The notes below the pieces were generated by a model. The model was given only the letters and a program-made list of their open reading frames with translations. It had not been told where the DNA came from and searched no databases. 64,000 nt of DNA, from the sequence record MZ475891.1; one strand, 5' to 3'. Numbering within the stretch: the first letter of the stretch is position 1; every line of letters begins with the position of its first letter. The position numbers and the translations under genes were made by a program. Shown here in pieces: positions 19,185 through 59,410 of the stretch.

Positions 19185-19391
19185 ATGAAAGACATTGTGC
19201 TACACACAGCCCTTTTATTGCCCATGATCGTTGTTAGCTTTTTGACTCTCCATTACATTCGCTTCCTGAGTCTGGGCTACTATATGCTGATCACTATGAC
19301 AGCATTCGTACTGGCCGTGTATGCGTGCAAGCGTCTCGCATCTGCTGTCACTAAAAATCGTTTTAACAAAGTGAGAATCAATCGTGGCTAA
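19185..19391 (+). CDS. small membrane protein (68 aa)
   Basis: two hydrophobic stretches, tight packing. Confidence 0.65.
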   Translation: MKDIVLHTALLLPMIVVSFLTLHYIRFLSLGYYMLITMTAFVLAVYACKRLASAVTKNRFNKVRINRG

Positions 19392-19929
19392 ATCTTTCGG
19401 TGTGTATCTGACGTTCATTCTGCGCCATCGACCGCAAGACATTGGCATTGCAATGGACACCCAAGGCTGGGTATCAGTTCCTGACTTGCTCGAACGTGCT
19501 CAATACAAGAAGCAGCCAATCACGTTAGAGATGTTGCGTGAAGAAGTTGCTACTGACGGTAAAGGCCGCTTCCAGTTTAACGCTGCCCACTCGCGCATTC
19601 GTTGTGTGCAGGGACATTCAGTTGAGCATGTGATTCTTAACCTCAAGCCGTACACGAATCACAATGACCCGCTGTATCACGGAACAGCCAGCAAGAACGT
19701 TGCGTCTATTCTTGCGCAGGGAATTCTTCGCGGTAAGCGTAAACATGTCCACATCGCGACCAACACCGCTACTGCTAAGCAAGTTGGTCAGCGTCACGGT
19801 GAACCTGTTGTGTTTGAGATCGACACGTATGCCATGATTACTCACGGCTATAAGTTCGAACGAGCCGAGAACGGTGTAATTCTTATCGAGCACGTCCCAT
19901 CCCGATATCTAAGGTTGGTAGAGTTATGA
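19384..19929 (+). CDS. kptA: NAD-dependent RNA 2'-phosphotransferase (KptA/Tpt1)
   Basis: ILRH, GWVSV, KGRF, IRCVQGHS, LYHGT, RKHVHIA, VGQRHG, NGVIL. Confidence 0.93.
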   Translation: MAKSFGVYLTFILRHRPQDIGIAMDTQGWVSVPDLLERAQYKKQPITLEMLREEVATDGKGRFQFNAAHSRIRCVQGHSVEHVILNLKPYTNHNDPLYHGTASKNVASILAQGILRGKRKHVHIATNTATAKQVGQRHGEPVVFEIDTYAMITHGYKFERAENGVILIEHVPSRYLRLVEL

Positions 19930-20505: not shown

Positions 20506-21645
20506 ATGATGCGTAACTTCACGGCAATCCTGCCAGTAACCTGTAATGCCGATTGTTCATTCTGCCCTGAGAAAGAAATGGAGCAGAAAGCTACGAACCG
20601 CCAGTGGCTGACTAACCTCATCTCGCAGATTAATGATCATGCTGGTGAGTTCGACCACGTTTCAATCTCTGGCGGTGAGCCTACGCTCAAGCCAAAGTTC
20701 CTGTTTGAAGTGATCGATGCGATTCGCAATCAAACGGATATCGATAAAGTTGGACTCACGTCTAACGGTCGCTTCCTGAATAAGCAAGACAGCATTTTTC
20801 AGTTTCTTGATCTGAACACAGACGACATGCTGGAAAGCAAGCTGTCCCATCTGAATATCAGCCGTCATTCATTCGATGATGCCAAGAACAACGAGATCAT
20901 GAAAGTGCGTTACACGTACACGCTCGATGATCTTGTGAAGTTTAGACGTCAACTCGGCACGAAGCTGAGCTTCCACATTAACTTCGTTATCAACGAGCAC
21001 AACATCGATAACATTGAGTGGGAGTTTGCACAGGCTAATCGATTCATGATGGAGAATCCGTGGATCGATGTAGTGTTCCGCGTTGACTATGCAAACGAAA
21101 AGCTGAATCGTCGTCTGCGTCGTTACGGCCTGTCTGTGCAAGCGTGGCGTGATGCAACTCGCGGCTCTATTCGTGATGAACGCATAGCGCGTGAGAAGCT
21201 GAAAAAGAAACCCAAACTCGTTCAGTTGTTTGATGGAGTGTTTAGCGGTACAACACAGGACAATGACGGTACATTTACCGATGCGTGTCCAAGCTGTTTC
21301 GTACATCGCAGCCAGAAGATTCATAACAACCACGCGTGGCTAAAAGCGTCCTCGTACGAACCGAACGTAGACGAAGAGGAATACACTGAGTATGTGTTCC
21401 ACATGGACGGCGAACTTTACTACGACTGGTCGCGTGCTGAGCCTGTGCCTGCCGTAGAGAAGAAGCCGCGCAAACACAAAGCCATTCGCATTATCCAGAG
21501 AGAAGTGGAAGAAGATGATATGGATGAAGACATGCCTGCATCTTCTCGTATGGGTTGTCAGTATAGAACTGTCGGATGTTCTTACGGTGAATCAGAATCT
21601 GCTGGTGGCTGTTCATTTAGATCTCCTGGCAGCTGTAGCTTTTAA
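20506..21645 (+). CDS. radical SAM protein with Cys-repeat C-terminal tail
   Basis: CNADCSFC (CxxxCxxC), ISGGEPTL, LTSNG, LNISRH; tail GCQY/GCSY/GCSF/SCSF. Confidence 0.9.
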   Translation: MMRNFTAILPVTCNADCSFCPEKEMEQKATNRQWLTNLISQINDHAGEFDHVSISGGEPTLKPKFLFEVIDAIRNQTDIDKVGLTSNGRFLNKQDSIFQFLDLNTDDMLESKLSHLNISRHSFDDAKNNEIMKVRYTYTLDDLVKFRRQLGTKLSFHINFVINEHNIDNIEWEFAQANRFMMENPWIDVVFRVDYANEKLNRRLRRYGLSVQAWRDATRGSIRDERIAREKLKKKPKLVQLFDGVFSGTTQDNDGTFTDACPSCFVHRSQKIHNNHAWLKASSYEPNVDEEEYTEYVFHMDGELYYDWSRAEPVPAVEKKPRKHKAIRIIQREVEEDDMDEDMPASSRMGCQYRTVGCSYGESESAGGCSFRSPGSCSF

Positions 21646-21658
21646 TTAAGGAAAGATT

Positions 21659-21895
21659 ATGTCAGACCCAAAACCAAAACCAGAAGTAACAAAAGCTGAT
21701 CTCCAACATCTGCTGCACGTAGCAGGTGCGTATGAAGGCAACGACCGCCATCGCTGGTACGCAATGTTCGTCGTGCTCAAACTGAAACGTCAGATGGACG
21801 GTCAGAACCTGCCGCGCTCTTGTGCCAACATTACGCATGAGAGCCAAGACTACGAGATCGAAGAGGCTTGCTACAAGCTGGGGTATTTATCATGA
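21659..21895 (+). CDS. hypothetical protein (78 aa)
   Basis: AAGGA RBS. Confidence 0.7.
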   Translation: MSDPKPKPEVTKADLQHLLHVAGAYEGNDRHRWYAMFVVLKLKRQMDGQNLPRSCANITHESQDYEIEEACYKLGYLS

Positions 21896-22910: not shown

Positions 22911-23174
22911 ATGGCAGTAGGTTTCGCCAAAGATGATGACGTGTCCAACACCGTCGAAACAAACGTGCTGAATGAAATCGACCGCGCTCGTTCTGAGTTG
23001 CGTGGCGCTGGTAGTTCGCACTGTATCAACCCTGACTGTGGTGCAGAGATTCCACTCATGCGCCGCGTAGCAATGCCGAACGCTCGCTACTGCGTTAGCT
23101 GTCAAGCACACCATGACGGTACGCCTGCTGTTGGCTACAATCGTCGTGGCTCTAAAGATTCTCAACTGAGGTAG
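22911..23174 (+). CDS. ybiI: DksA/TraR C4 zinc-finger protein, YbiI-like
   Basis: CINPDCGAEIP..RR.A.P.ARYCVSCQ; ends YNRRGSKDSQLR like enterobacterial YbiI as recalled. Confidence 0.85.
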   Translation: MAVGFAKDDDVSNTVETNVLNEIDRARSELRGAGSSHCINPDCGAEIPLMRRVAMPNARYCVSCQAHHDGTPAVGYNRRGSKDSQLR

Positions 23175-25786: not shown

Positions 25787-26767
25787 ATGCGTTTTGGTTT
25801 CGCCTGTAAACTGCTGGATGACAACGGTAAGCAACCGTACACGAACAAGAGCCTGAGCTATGCTCACTTCTCCAAGCTGTCTCAGACAGAGCAGCAAGAA
25901 AAGCTGGTGCTCGTCGTCACACACAATCTGACCTCGTTGCTTGAGATGATCAGACACGTTGGTCGTCTGCGTACCGACTTGCGTATGTTTCGAATCACAA
26001 GCGAACTACTTCCGCTGTTCACGCACCCGATGGTCACACGCATGTATCTCCAAACACACATGACCAAACTGACAGACACGATGTTGGCAACGTGTGGTGC
26101 AGCGGCTAGACGTCTCGGTGTGCGACTGTCATTCCACCCAGGTCAGTTTACCGTGCTTGCGTCTGACCGACCCGACGTTATGCTCAACTCGATTAACGAA
26201 ATGGAGTATCACGCCTACTGTGCGCAGGCTATGGGCTACGGTCGTAAGTTCCAAGATTTCAAAATCAACATTCACCTGAGCGGTCGTCGTGGTGCCGCAG
26301 GTTTCAGAGACGCCTACTCTCGTCTAAGCGATCATTGCCGCAAGATGATCACGGTAGAGAATGACGAGTACACTTCCTCGATCGAGGATTGTCTTGAGCT
26401 TGCCGACATTTGTCCTGTTGTTCTCGACATTCACCATCACTGGGTAATGACTAACGAATACATTCAGCCGACAGATGATCGTGTTCAACGTGTCATTGAC
26501 TCGTGGCGAGGCGTTCGTCCTGTTGCGCATTACTCTGTGTCACGCCCAGAGTTCATACCGTCTACGGGTCTGCCTGATCAGAACAAGCTAGAAGCAAAGT
26601 CTGCCTCGCTGCGTGCTCATTCCGACTACTACCACAACGACAGCGTAAACGAGTGGGCCCTCAGCTTCGAGCAATTCGACCTGATGTGCGAGTCTAAAGC
26701 GAAGAATCTAGCACGCACGAAACTAGCCCTTTTTAAGGGCAACTCTGCACAAATATGGTCAAAATAA
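25787..26767 (+). CDS. uvsE: UV-damage endonuclease UvsE/UVDE
   Basis: FGFACK, MFRITSELLP, RLSFHPGQFTVLAS, ITVENDE, LDIHHHW, RPVAHYS, LRAHSDY. Confidence 0.93.
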   Translation: MRFGFACKLLDDNGKQPYTNKSLSYAHFSKLSQTEQQEKLVLVVTHNLTSLLEMIRHVGRLRTDLRMFRITSELLPLFTHPMVTRMYLQTHMTKLTDTMLATCGAAARRLGVRLSFHPGQFTVLASDRPDVMLNSINEMEYHAYCAQAMGYGRKFQDFKINIHLSGRRGAAGFRDAYSRLSDHCRKMITVENDEYTSSIEDCLELADICPVVLDIHHHWVMTNEYIQPTDDRVQRVIDSWRGVRPVAHYSVSRPEFIPSTGLPDQNKLEAKSASLRAHSDYYHNDSVNEWALSFEQFDLMCESKAKNLARTKLALFKGNSAQIWSK

Positions 26768-54915: not shown

Positions 54916-54986
54916 ACATATAGGACAAGTAGTGTCTGAATATGCTAATATCGAGTGGTCAACGCTACTCATTAGGAGAAACGAAA

Positions 54987-57014
54987 ATGGCGAAAACGCC
55001 TAAAGCCGCAAAAGTCAAAAAGGGTGACGGCTCCCAAGATGGCTTCACTATCGCAGAAGGCCTCGACGGGATTCGACTAAACCCTGGCATGTACATGGGT
55101 CAACAGGGTGCGGACATGGCGTATCGCGCTGTGAAAGAACCTGTGGACAATGACTACGATGAATACATCGCAGGTCGTAACAAGTTGATCGAAGTGGTCA
55201 TTGATTACGATAGCGACCTGAACATCGTAGCTGACCAAGCAGGCGGCATTCCTACCGACTTTAAGAAACTGAAAGACGGTACGAAAGAAACGATCATGAC
55301 CGCAGCGTTTAGCCGTGTTCATGCGGGTGGTAAATTCAACGATCAGGCATATAAGACCTCTGCTGGTACACACGGTGTAGGTGTAGCTGCACTGAACGCA
55401 ATCTCCAGTCAGTTGCGTGTGTGGTCAATGTACAAAGGCAGTTGCGCTTATCAGATGTGGCAGTGTGGCGAAGTCAAGTCGGGCAAAGACCCTAAGAAAG
55501 TCAAGACCATCGACAAAGACGTTATGAGCCTGCTGCGCGATAAGAAGCACAGCAAGTACGGTACTGTGGTAGCGTGGACGCTTGACCAGACTGTTGTGTC
55601 TGCTGATGCACAGCGTGGTAAGAAGCTGCCTAAGAACTATCGACACGCTGCTCCTAATCCAGCTCAGCTTGGTGAGTGGCTGCGTAACATGTCAATGCTC
55701 AACCCAGGCCTTGAGATTCGCCTGACGTTGATCAAAAAGGGCAAGCGCAAAGAGTTCACTTTCATCAACAAGAAAGACCTGAACTATGTTGTGAAGACTA
55801 TGTGTGAAGAACGCGAGCTGGGAACTGTAGGAAAGCCGTTCATCTTCAAGTCTGACAATATCACGGCTGCGCTTGCTTGGACAGATCATGCAGACACTGA
55901 CAACTTCCTCAGTTTCGTTAACACCAGCCCAACAGTTGATGGCGGGTGGCACGTAGTAGGTTTCCGTGATGCGCTGTTTGATGCAATCAAGCCGTTCATG
56001 AAAGAACCGAAAGGTAAGGGCAAGAAGAAGAAGCAGGGCTTCAAACAAGAAGACTTGTTGATTGGCCTGACCGGTATGTTCGACTGGCGTATGCACGGTG
56101 CTCAATACACCTCGCAGGTAAAAGACAAGCTGGCCAGCCGCGTCGAGAAAGACGTGTACGAAATGCTGAAAGATGCTTTCGTGAAATACTTCAAGGACAA
56201 TAAGAAGGTCGCTACGACAATCATCAAGCGTGCCGAAGCGATGAACAAGGGACGTGAAGAACTCAGCGCCGTCGTTAAGTCTATGGCTGATACGAAGAAG
56301 AAGCTGAAAGGTAACGCACTGCCTGCCGACCTCGTTGTCGCAAACAAGTGTAAGCCGCATGAGCGTGAGCTTGTCGTGGTGGAAGGGGATTCTGCTGGTG
56401 GTACTGCAAAAGATGCGCGTAACCCTGACTATCAGGAAGTTATGAAAGCTGGTGGTAAGCCGCTGAACGGTCTGAAAGCAAGTCTGGCTGACGTACTCAA
56501 GCACAAAGAAGTGCAGGGTATGCTGGTGAGTATCGGTGCTGACCTGAAATCGCTTGACCCGAAAGCAGAAGCACCAAAGTTGAGCACGAAGAATCTGCGT
56601 ATAGGCAACATCCTGTTTCTTGCTGATGCTGACCCAGATGGCTTCCACATCAACGTGCTGTTCCTCGGCGTTATCTATCGATTGCTGCCTGACTTGATGA
56701 AAGAAGGCCGTGTGTGGATTGTTGACGCACCGCTGTACAACGTTATCCATCAGGGCAAACACTACGGTGGTATGACGTTTGAAGAATGCCGTGCTAAAGC
56801 GCCGTCTGCTGTAAAAGACAAAGACATTGTACGCGCTAAAGGTTGGGGTGAAGTTGAGCCTGACGTGCTTGAAGCAATCGCGTTCAATCCGAAAACTCGT
56901 CGTCTCATTCGTGTTAACCCGTTTGAGAACGTTGAGCAGGAACGTTTCTTTAGAGGTGTAGTTGCAGAAGATGCAGTTCACCGTCGTCGCTTGCTCGGTC
57001 TGGAGGCAGCATGA
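54987..57014 (+). CDS. gyrB: type IIA DNA topoisomerase, ATPase/TOPRIM (GyrB/ParE-like) subunit
   Basis: IRLNPGMYMG, EPVDNDYDE, HAGGKF, SAGTHGVGVAALNA, VEGDSAGG, DADPDGFHI, RAKGWGEV; AGGAG RBS. Confidence 0.93.
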   Translation: MAKTPKAAKVKKGDGSQDGFTIAEGLDGIRLNPGMYMGQQGADMAYRAVKEPVDNDYDEYIAGRNKLIEVVIDYDSDLNIVADQAGGIPTDFKKLKDGTKETIMTAAFSRVHAGGKFNDQAYKTSAGTHGVGVAALNAISSQLRVWSMYKGSCAYQMWQCGEVKSGKDPKKVKTIDKDVMSLLRDKKHSKYGTVVAWTLDQTVVSADAQRGKKLPKNYRHAAPNPAQLGEWLRNMSMLNPGLEIRLTLIKKGKRKEFTFINKKDLNYVVKTMCEERELGTVGKPFIFKSDNITAALAWTDHADTDNFLSFVNTSPTVDGGWHVVGFRDALFDAIKPFMKEPKGKGKKKKQGFKQEDLLIGLTGMFDWRMHGAQYTSQVKDKLASRVEKDVYEMLKDAFVKYFKDNKKVATTIIKRAEAMNKGREELSAVVKSMADTKKKLKGNALPADLVVANKCKPHERELVVVEGDSAGGTAKDARNPDYQEVMKAGGKPLNGLKASLADVLKHKEVQGMLVSIGADLKSLDPKAEAPKLSTKNLRIGNILFLADADPDGFHINVLFLGVIYRLLPDLMKEGRVWIVDAPLYNVIHQGKHYGGMTFEECRAKAPSAVKDKDIVRAKGWGEVEPDVLEAIAFNPKTRRLIRVNPFENVEQERFFRGVVAEDAVHRRRLLGLEAA

Positions 57015-57748: not shown

Positions 57749-59410
57749 ATGCCAATCAAACCTAAGAAAGTCAAAGCGGCCAAAGCAGTTAAGCCTGCTA
57801 AAGCGACCGCTGTTGCAAAGCCACTTAAAGTCAAAGTGAAATCGAAAGCCGTTTCTGTCGATGACATTAAGACAAAGAAAAAGTCGAAAGAAGTCGCCGC
57901 AGTGCAGACAGGCGCATCGCTCTATCCGATGATTGGTCAAGACGAATCTAACATTCGTGACCAGGGCCTCGCAGATTACACACGCCACGCGCTGGGTGTG
58001 TACGGTTCTTACGTTGTTGAAGACCGAGCTATCGCTGACTATCGTGATGGCCTCAAGCCTGTGCACCGTGCGCTGTTGTGGTCGTTGTCTGATCTTAACT
58101 TGCGTCCTGGTGGTGCGTTCAAGAAATCTGCGCGTACTGTTGGTGACACGATCGGTAAGTATCACCCGCACGGCGATGCAGCCTGTTACGGCGCAATGGT
58201 AACGATTGCAAACACAGTGCCACCGGCTGTTGCTGGTTCTGGTAACTGGGGTAGCCCTGTTGACCCTGCTGCTGCTATGCGTTATACCGAAGCGAAGATG
58301 AGTAAGTTCACGGGTACGTTCTTGCTCGACTCTGATTACTTAGAAGTTGTACCTCGTGTGCCTAACTTCTCAAACGATCTTGAGCTACCGCTTTACTTGC
58401 CTGCTCTGCTGCCGTACATGTTGTTCAATGGCTCTGTGCCTGCACCAGCGTACGGCGTCAAGTGTGGTAACCCGTCATTCAGCTTCGCGTCCGTATCTAA
58501 AGTCGTGTGTGAGATGCTGAGCGGCAAAGAGTACACAGCGAAGACGCTTGCGAAGACGCTTGAGATTCGCCATGAGTTCGGCTGTATCGACGTTAGCTCT
58601 GACGAAGATATGTACCAGCTTATCTCAACAGGCCGTGGCAAAGTCACATACGAACCGCTGATTAAGATCGATGAGAAGTCGAAGACCATCACGATTCAAA
58701 CGTATGTGCCTGCTGGCATGTCCAATACTGCGGGTATCACTAAGAAGCTGGAGAAGATTTCTGAGTGGCCAGGCATTAGCTCCGCAGCAAACGCCAGTGG
58801 CAAGAAGAACAAGAACGCAGGTCCTTACGGTGCAGCGTTTGAGTTCCGCGTACGTGGTAGTGAAGACCAGTTGTACGAACTCGCCTCACGCATTCAGAAG
58901 GAAGTGACTGCTGGCGTCAACTACAATCTGGGCGTTACGATTCGTCGCGCCGATAAGCCGAACACCTTCAAGTATCTGAACTATCTGGATTACTTCAAGG
59001 CGTGGGTAGCGTATCGTATCAAACTCGAAACAGCCATGCTGAACAACAAGCTGGCCAAAGCAGAGAAAGCCCTGCACTTGCAGCAAGTTTATCTGTGGGC
59101 AGTTGACAACATGAAGCAACTGCTGGCTGCCTTGCCTAAAGTGTTAGTCGCAGAAGACCCAGACAAAGCGCTGGCCAAAGCGTGCAAGATTCCAGTTGAA
59201 GATGCGAAGATCATCCTCGACCGTCAAGTGCGTAAACTCGCCAAGCTGGAACGTGGTGGTCTGATTGCCAAAATCAAAGACATTAAGGAAGAGATTGCTG
59301 GTTATAAGGCAGGCTTGAAAGCGCCAGGCAAACATGCAGCACAGAGCACGGCTGCGAAAGTCAAAGCGTACATCAAATCACCTGATGATAAGCTGCCCGT
59401 AAGTCTTTGA
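57749..59410 (+). CDS. gyrA: type IIA DNA topoisomerase, breakage-reunion (GyrA/ParC-like) subunit without a C-terminal beta-pinwheel
   Basis: RAIADYRDGLKPVHR, KKSARTVGDTIGKYHPHGD, GNWGS, AAMRYTEAKM (catalytic Tyr); only 553 aa. Confidence 0.93.
   Translation: MPIKPKKVKAAKAVKPAKATAVAKPLKVKVKSKAVSVDDIKTKKKSKEVAAVQTGASLYPMIGQDESNIRDQGLADYTRHALGVYGSYVVEDRAIADYRDGLKPVHRALLWSLSDLNLRPGGAFKKSARTVGDTIGKYHPHGDAACYGAMVTIANTVPPAVAGSGNWGSPVDPAAAMRYTEAKMSKFTGTFLLDSDYLEVVPRVPNFSNDLELPLYLPALLPYMLFNGSVPAPAYGVKCGNPSFSFASVSKVVCEMLSGKEYTAKTLAKTLEIRHEFGCIDVSSDEDMYQLISTGRGKVTYEPLIKIDEKSKTITIQTYVPAGMSNTAGITKKLEKISEWPGISSAANASGKKNKNAGPYGAAFEFRVRGSEDQLYELASRIQKEVTAGVNYNLGVTIRRADKPNTFKYLNYLDYFKAWVAYRIKLETAMLNNKLAKAEKALHLQQVYLWAVDNMKQLLAALPKVLVAEDPDKALAKACKIPVEDAKIILDRQVRKLAKLERGGLIAKIKDIKEEIAGYKAGLKAPGKHAAQSTAAKVKAYIKSPDDKLPVSL

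Follow-up and report, generated by a model that had tools for sequence, protein, structure and literature searches.

A phage radical SAM protein family whose terminal cysteine module is fused to the enzyme or encoded beside it

The gene pEaSNUABM13_00280, annotated in the database as 'hypothetical protein', lies in a 64,000-nt stretch (the window) of MZ475891.1, from the genome of Erwinia phage pEa_SNUABM_13 (264.7 kb), a jumbo phage that has Erwinia amylovora as its host. Its product (hereafter the window protein) is a member of the radical S-adenosylmethionine (SAM) superfamily by its cluster motif, Pfam score, fold and GGE-type motif, and it ends in a module of short cysteine-containing units. 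Across the family this Cys module is an obligatory part that can be separated from the enzyme: about nine of ten clusters have it as a fusion, and otherwise it is encoded next door. Because the split partners are adjacent and no other neighbour is conserved, we read the enzyme and its Cys module as a self-contained, separable two-part system. Radical SAM enzymes form the largest enzyme superfamily and, to our knowledge, most of the members encoded by phages have no known role.

Fused and split forms of the Cys module

A sequence-only reading of the window had described four (G/S)C(S/Q)(Y/F) repeats at the C-terminus of a radical SAM enzyme, preceded by the acidic linker EEDDMDEDM, and both elements are present as described (Table 1). 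Four C-x-[YFW] units did not arise once by chance, either in shuffles of the whole protein (0/200,000) or in shuffles of its last 40 residues (0/200,000). The residues that follow the four Cys of the window protein are Q, S, S and S. No tandem or direct DNA repeat was found under the tail, so the Cys units are maintained as protein sequence.

Tail conservation and copy number in homologues, which the sequence-only reading had proposed to follow, were then compared in a close set of 68 homologues found by word index. All close homologues carry 2-5 C-x-[YF] units. In nearly all, the units follow a variable Lys/Glu/Pro-rich tether (16.5% Lys), and C-x-[YFW] is the exact C-terminus in 38 of the 68. 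Tyr and Phe are used equally in the units (75 vs 76). The number of units varies even among close relatives, with four at 83% identity, two at 69%, and three plus a terminal Cys at ~60%. Every member of the close set (68/68) comes from a phage or phage-like contig, mostly of jumbo phages of Erwinia and Yersinia; one is on a contig of a 'Proteus mirabilis' assembly, and this contig bears phage genes. As the 68 sequences are not independent of each other, counts at the level of representatives are safer.

For such counts the wider family was collected by a profile search of 1.84 billion representatives, which gave 241 clusters (50% identity) at E<1e-30. Distant members have (G/S)-C-G repeats in place of C-x-aromatic, and the consensus unit of the family is [GS]-[GS]-C-G-[GS]; Tyr/Phe units are thus a peculiarity of the jumbo phages in the Erwinia/Yersinia clade. 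Tails were counted on the best 150 of the 241 clusters, nearly all of which have a (G/S)-C-G tail. Tail Cys were present in 134 of these 150 (~89%), most commonly two (60 clusters), with four in 24 clusters and three in 20. Their number spans 2-10 across the family, on tethers that run from a few to >100 residues. Successive Cys mostly have a spacing of 5-9, and in 113 of the 134 tailed clusters the distance from the last Cys to the C-terminus is 0-2 residues. The conserved element is a Cys pair or repeat at the end of a flexible tether, and the tail itself is a conserved functional module rather than the product of drift.

Members without a tail make up roughly one in ten and end directly after a conserved D-W motif. 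In every tailless locus with usable DNA context (9/9), an adjacent small open reading frame (ORF) supplies the Cys module. At seven of these loci (L010, L011, L015, L018, L021, L038 and L095) the partner ORF has a helical and/or basic N-terminal part and ends in a Cys pair or Cys repeats; one gene intervenes between enzyme and partner in L011, and the partner lies upstream in L021. The partners at L012 (1095-1325, 76 aa) and L093 (21-674, 217 aa) have the opposite layout, with a Cys/Gly-rich motif at the N-terminus and a helical, Lys-rich region after it. A simple 'Cys-pair C-terminus' rule picked out 6 of 40 small ORFs beside tailless genes, compared with 67 of 7197 elsewhere (Fisher p = 2.5e-6). 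A pattern of fused and split forms is expected if an enzyme has become fused to its substrate or to another kind of partner. No significant Pfam or NCBIfam match was obtained for the tails, the split peptides or an N-terminal extension seen in relatives, and none of them matched a known precursor family or a RiPP (ribosomally synthesised and post-translationally modified peptide) recognition element (RRE).

The N-terminal extension, of ~95 aa, precedes the radical SAM motif in many relatives, among them the Alexandravirus homologues L003 (2718-4295) and L004 (2718-4238). It has no Pfam match; the window protein lacks it, and no remnant of it was found upstream of the window gene. In pEa_SNUABM_7 (L002 2796-3041) an 82-aa ORF is annotated at the site of this extension, overlapping the start. 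A 426-aa homologue (L013 3923-5203) has a different C-terminal extension of ~155 aa, which contains Cys but lacks Cys repeats at its end; a search of the surroundings gave no partner ORF.

Table 1. Features of the radical SAM gene and its product, in window coordinates. A1, A3 and A4 are homologue alignments.
Feature	Residues	Position	Strand	Basis
Radical SAM gene pEaSNUABM13_00280	379 aa + stop	20506..21645	+	ORF list; 100% identity to MZ475891.1
CxxxCxxC, radical SAM [4Fe-4S] cluster site	13-20	20542..20565	+	C13, C17 and C20 invariant in 53 homologues
SGGEP, GGE-type SAM-binding motif	55-59	20668..20682	+	S53, G56, G57 and E58 invariant
CPSC pair in C-terminal subdomain	261-264	21286..21297	+	Invariant in A1, A3 and A4
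Basic stretch of tether	319-325	21460..21480	+	Sequence
Disordered tail (tether plus Cys-repeat module)	323-379	21472..21642	+	pLDDT <50
Acidic linker	335-343	21508..21534	+	Sequence
Cys unit 1, C-Q-Y (GCQY)	351-353	21556..21564	+	C351 invariant in A1
Cys unit 2, C-S-Y (GCSY)	358-360	21577..21585	+	Sequence
Cys unit 3, C-S-F (GCSF)	369-371	21610..21618	+	C369 nearly invariant in A1
Cys unit 4, C-S-F (SCSF), C-terminus	377-379	21634..21642	+	Sequence

The radical SAM core, its relatives and its genomic setting

The window protein matches the Pfam Radical_SAM family (PF04055) at 43.9 bits, above the cut-off of 29.5, and its SGGEP motif aligns with the same motif in MoaA and the viperins. An AlphaFold2 (AF2) model built with 53 homologues has a mean predicted local distance difference test (pLDDT) score of 84.9, with residues 1-322 mostly >90. 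In this model the invariant CPSC sits at the turn of a predicted beta hairpin (strands 257-261 and 264-268). Its two Cys, C261 and C264, are the only further invariant Cys of the core outside the cluster motif, and the homologue alignments revealed no conserved Cys or His partner for them elsewhere in the core. The sequence-only reading had missed this pair; it was right in seeing no SPASM-type Cys cluster, as the SPASM family gives no match in the window protein.

The fold is the partial TIM barrel of the superfamily. Foldseek comparisons with viperin, MoaA and other structures returned E-values of ~1e-9 to 1e-11, the viperins matching the core over ~200 columns and MoaA matching loosely over the whole length. 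For a compact homologue (P0131, pLDDT 94) the best fold match was MoaA, with a TM score of 0.64 over 275 columns, followed by BlsE, viperins, SuiB, SkfB, EpeE and DesII. MoaA was also the best profile match in the PDB (1.5e-15), with a sequence alignment that ends at about residue 180. A profile of the CxxC subdomain gave chance-level matches only against solved structures (E ~0.2, baculovirus sulfhydryl oxidases). Peptide-modifying relatives are also found among the best matches, namely HxsC by NCBIfam, and YydG/EpeE, SuiB and SkfB by both sequence and fold. The NCBIfam models of RiPP and SPASM-type maturases scored 15-26 bits against cut-offs of 300-650, and none passed.

The window protein does not qualify as a viperin, a MoaA, an HxsC or a SPASM/twitch maturase, because in each case a defining feature is missing. 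Scores for MoaA were 46-54 bits in NCBIfam against 231-325, a third conserved core Cys is lacking, and the protein ends in C-S-F, not Gly-Gly. Scores for viperin were 51.7 bits against 180, with matches limited to aa 12-169, and the PADLOC model of prokaryotic viperins (pVip) gave 50 bits. HxsC reached 53.9 bits against a cut-off of 267.9, and its partners HxsA, HxsB and HxsD are absent from the loci examined. A SPASM/twitch maturase is excluded by the missing SPASM match and by the presence of two further invariant Cys only. We also rejected a glycyl-radical activase fused to its target: the Gly that should follow the Cys is found in 0 of 4 units of the window protein and in 113 of 244 units of the close homologues, and activase models score 16-28 bits, under their cut-offs. 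The radical SAM isomerase gp53 of phage M6 is SPL-like and unrelated. A literature search found no published description of the family or the gene.

No conserved neighbour gene was found in 5 loci and then none in 40 diverse loci, which have only the radical SAM gene in common; nor was a protease, transporter or immunity gene conserved across the 40. All members come from phage contexts, and the phages range in size from ~35 kb to jumbo phages. When 185,579 species-representative cellular genomes were scanned with patterns that favour the Erwinia clade, partial matches to the radical SAM core and no member were returned. The family is apparently restricted to phages.

Two genes upstream of the window gene lies a Tpt1/KptA-family RNA 2'-phosphotransferase gene (19384-19929, +; Pfam 3.6e-44, PHROG 5.8e-63), whose synteny is kept in Alexandravirus relatives and not in distant loci of the family. 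The same plus-strand gene block includes a small DksA/TraR C4 zinc-finger protein (22911-23174, +; 2.2e-10) and a homologue of the UvdE UV-damage endonuclease (25787-26767, +; Pfam 9.7e-47). At the start of the next gene a CCAAAA tandem of 2.5 copies (21668-21682) encodes a Pro-Lys run and is probably trivial. Elsewhere in the window, a 799-aa ORF (71-2470, +) matches RecA in two stretches (3e-22) and is far longer than an ordinary RecA/UvsX; it possibly carries an inserted element. Type II topoisomerase subunits are encoded by a GyrB-like gene with a Toprim domain and a GyrA/ParC-like gene (54942-57014, +, and 57749-59410, +). In other phages, the gene of the tailless member P0190 lies between those of a T4-type prohead protease (S77) and a scaffold protein, with 74-aa ORFs on both sides, and the tailless gene of L093 (676-1488) is directly upstream of the tail sheath and tube genes.

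Possible roles of the Cys module

We tentatively favour the reading that the Cys module serves its own enzyme as a dedicated protein substrate and that the enzyme modifies itself at the Cys units. Of the two parts of the system, one is a radical SAM core that resembles MoaA and the viperins and presents the CxxC at a hairpin turn of its C-terminal beta subdomain. The other is a flexible tether, often basic and/or helical, with Cys repeats at its extreme terminus. From this observed anatomy, its conservation, the disorder of the tail and the fused-or-split relation, we infer the following chemistry. The tether would feed the terminal Cys units into the radical SAM active site, where the 5'-deoxyadenosyl radical generated from SAM would take a hydrogen from the Cys or from a position next to it. 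The CxxC would hold the thiol and accept the electron, probably as a metal or Fe-S half-site that the incoming thiolate or thiolates complete. The product would be a thioether-type or other Cys-centred modification that is kept on the protein with no release of a peptide. In the Erwinia/Yersinia clade the aromatic residue of C-x-Tyr/Phe may act as a recognition element or as a cross-link partner. Tyr-specific chemistry (a Cys-Tyr cofactor, or decarboxylation of a C-terminal Tyr as in mycofactocin) was rejected as the mechanism of the family, since Tyr and Phe are interchangeable and the aromatic is missing in the wider family. That the split partners vary in size and carry the motif at either terminus suggests a substrate rather than a part of the catalytic machinery. 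Proteins with repeats or many Cys that radical SAM enzymes modify, HxsA and CrpA, are precedents for such a role (below).

Several observations weigh against a substrate role. AF2 gives the tail no confident placement: its pLDDT is 32-45 in the window protein, and for a homologue with a short tail the values are 52-70. The best fold matches, MoaA, BlsE and the viperins, are enzymes that act on nucleotides. Nearly all known cross-linking radical SAM enzymes have full SPASM/twitch clusters, compared with two extra conserved Cys here. In the wider family only the Cys and its small neighbours are conserved, with no obvious acceptor residue. An even number of tail Cys (97 clusters) is more frequent than an odd number (37), which suits a dithiol or a ligand pair better than serial cross-links. 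Finally, an enzyme fused to its substrate has few turnovers, and there is no evident use for a modified tail. One such use, suggested by analogy with the repeat effector that is matured by radical SAM enzymes in the HXS system (below), is that the family forms a phage-wide class of self-modifying enzymes, whose protein-borne functional group would serve infection, for example against host defence or competing phages. We regard this as conceivable and rather doubtful.

In a second reading, the main rival, the module would be a redox or hydrogen-donor arm, whose terminal Cys pairs swing into the active site during turnover of an external, possibly nucleotide-like, substrate. The pairs would exchange with the core CxxC and be re-reduced by general thiol reductants, extra pairs acting as spares or as a relay. 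We consider such an arm unlikely. In its favour, the Cys pair is the basic unit of the module, given that two is the commonest number and that even numbers prevail. The spacing of mostly 5-9 and the position near the C-terminus, with a Cys pair in the last ~10 residues of a disordered tail, match the layout of the tail of ribonucleotide reductase (RNR). The core offers an invariant CxxC and no other conserved Cys, its closest folds belong to the nucleotide-acting enzymes named above, and one arm per enzyme in the fusions suits a cofactor-like part. MoaA itself has a tail that inserts into the active site and can be replaced in trans (PMC12625886). However, an N-terminal motif on separate proteins of 76 or 217 aa (L012, L093) would be odd for a catalytic arm, and odd Cys counts are not rare. 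Few invariant basic residues are able to hold a triphosphate, and the neighbourhood has no conserved gene that would point to an external substrate or a pathway.

The tail might instead supply auxiliary ligands and remain chemically unchanged, two tail thiolates joining C261 and C264 in a four-Cys site, for Zn or for an auxiliary cluster of the kind found in MoaA or twitch enzymes, that would belong to the catalytic machinery or the fold. The sequence-only reading had offered a metal- or Fe-S-binding tail as its alternative, and this idea gains weight from the invariant CxxC, which has no other conserved ligand partners in the core: the remaining conserved Cys are in the tail only, and Cys pairs dominate there. 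A CxxC at a beta-hairpin turn is also a typical metal 'knuckle', and the whole-length likeness in fold to MoaA, SkfB and EpeE is to enzymes with auxiliary clusters in the same C-terminal region. Nevertheless, a fixed site normally has fixed spacing, and here the tether varies from a few to >100 residues and the Cys number from 2 to 10 in a tail predicted to be disordered. A ligand pair delivered by a separate gene, at either terminus and on partners of varied size, would be unusual, and the CxxC could not be sequence-aligned with the auxiliary site of MoaA. We judge a pure ligand role improbable.

In a classical RiPP system the tail or split protein would be a precursor, and its modified core would be cleaved off to act as a free bioactive peptide. 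This would account for the small Cys-repeat ORF beside a radical SAM gene, a classical signature, and for the variable repeat number. We think a released RiPP very unlikely, given the lack of a conserved protease or exporter and of any match to a known precursor family. Likewise, no immunity gene is conserved in the 40 loci and no leader motif is matched, the module stays attached to an enzyme of 30-40 kDa in ~89% of members, and the would-be cores are G/S-rich low-complexity sequence. The enzyme-precursor fusion of the sequence-only reading, a phage RiPP-like system, thus survives in part: the conserved module and the fused-or-split pattern support the fusion, and the release of a peptide is not supported. 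Very unlikely, too, is a non-catalytic tail for localisation, disulfide oligomerisation, metal scavenging or particle incorporation, apart from any radical chemistry: some homologues do lie inside structural modules (between prohead protease and scaffold, or beside the tail sheath) and the tethers are Lys-rich, but in phages that are otherwise unrelated the module, whether fused or adjacent, is strictly tied to one enzyme family, and a generic targeting signal would be expected on other proteins, whereas such C-termini occur in 0.9% of small ORFs.

Comparison with known systems

Class Ia RNR has a flexible, disordered C-terminal tail. Very near its end are two Cys a few residues apart, which pass reducing equivalents on to a Cys pair in the active site. 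The analogy is functional only, with no homology found or expected: the enzyme class is unrelated, and the pairs of the phage family are often multiplied and may be carried by a protein of their own. Among PDB entries, viperins match the window protein best by sequence (3e-5 for the sequence alone, 3e-13 with a profile). These matches cover the N-terminal ~170-240 residues only, and the C-terminal subdomain and tail are unrelated.

MoaA has a disordered basic C-terminal tail, the last small residues of which enter its own active site, and a free peptide works in trans (PMC12625886). The terminal motif of the phage family is Cys-based and repeated, in contrast to the Gly-Gly of MoaA, and only two of the Cys that a MoaA-type auxiliary cluster needs are present. 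If the Cys module proved to be a dithiol arm or a ligand pair, it would be a new route by which reducing power or a metal site reaches a radical SAM enzyme, and would extend the recently described principle of the active-site-inserting tail of MoaA.

The maturases of sacti- and ranthipeptides, and CrpC, which carries out radical SAM thioether cross-linking of the Cys-rich protein CrpA (PMC13692751), are likewise radical SAM enzymes that act on Cys in short repeats, and SkfB and SuiB are among the fold matches of the phage family. These enzymes usually have an RRE, and their SPASM/twitch domains hold one full auxiliary cluster or two, whereas the phage family has the CxxC only. In the HXS anti-phage system, HxsB and HxsC mature His-x-Ser tripeptide repeats on the positively charged protein HxsA, so that the target is a protein and no small peptide set free (PMC13128918). 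HxsC is the top NCBIfam match of the window protein. However, the window gene belongs to a phage and not to a bacterial defence locus, its repeats are fused and, in the family, are C-x-Tyr/Phe or G-C-G, and the phage system has neither a signal peptide nor a peptidoglycan-binding part.

The fused-or-split logic is shared with the borosins (OphMA type), whose substrate lies at the C-terminus of the enzyme or in a separate adjacent gene (PMC8429565; 10.1101/2021.12.24.474128). Borosin enzymes are SAM-dependent N-methyltransferases whose product is excised by a protease, whereas the phage family is radical SAM and has no conserved protease. A radical SAM enzyme with a dedicated Cys-rich partner is an already known kind of system; what is new is the mostly fused architecture of enzyme and partner and the phage-restricted distribution. 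The comparison of fused and split forms defines the system cleanly and provides an annotation rule for hundreds of 'hypothetical' phage genes. Should the module be a substrate, radical SAM enzymes would be seen to modify proteins in a new architecture, and phages to make a new type of modified protein; a self-modifying class of this kind would give the enzyme-substrate fusions of the borosins their first counterpart among radical SAM enzymes.

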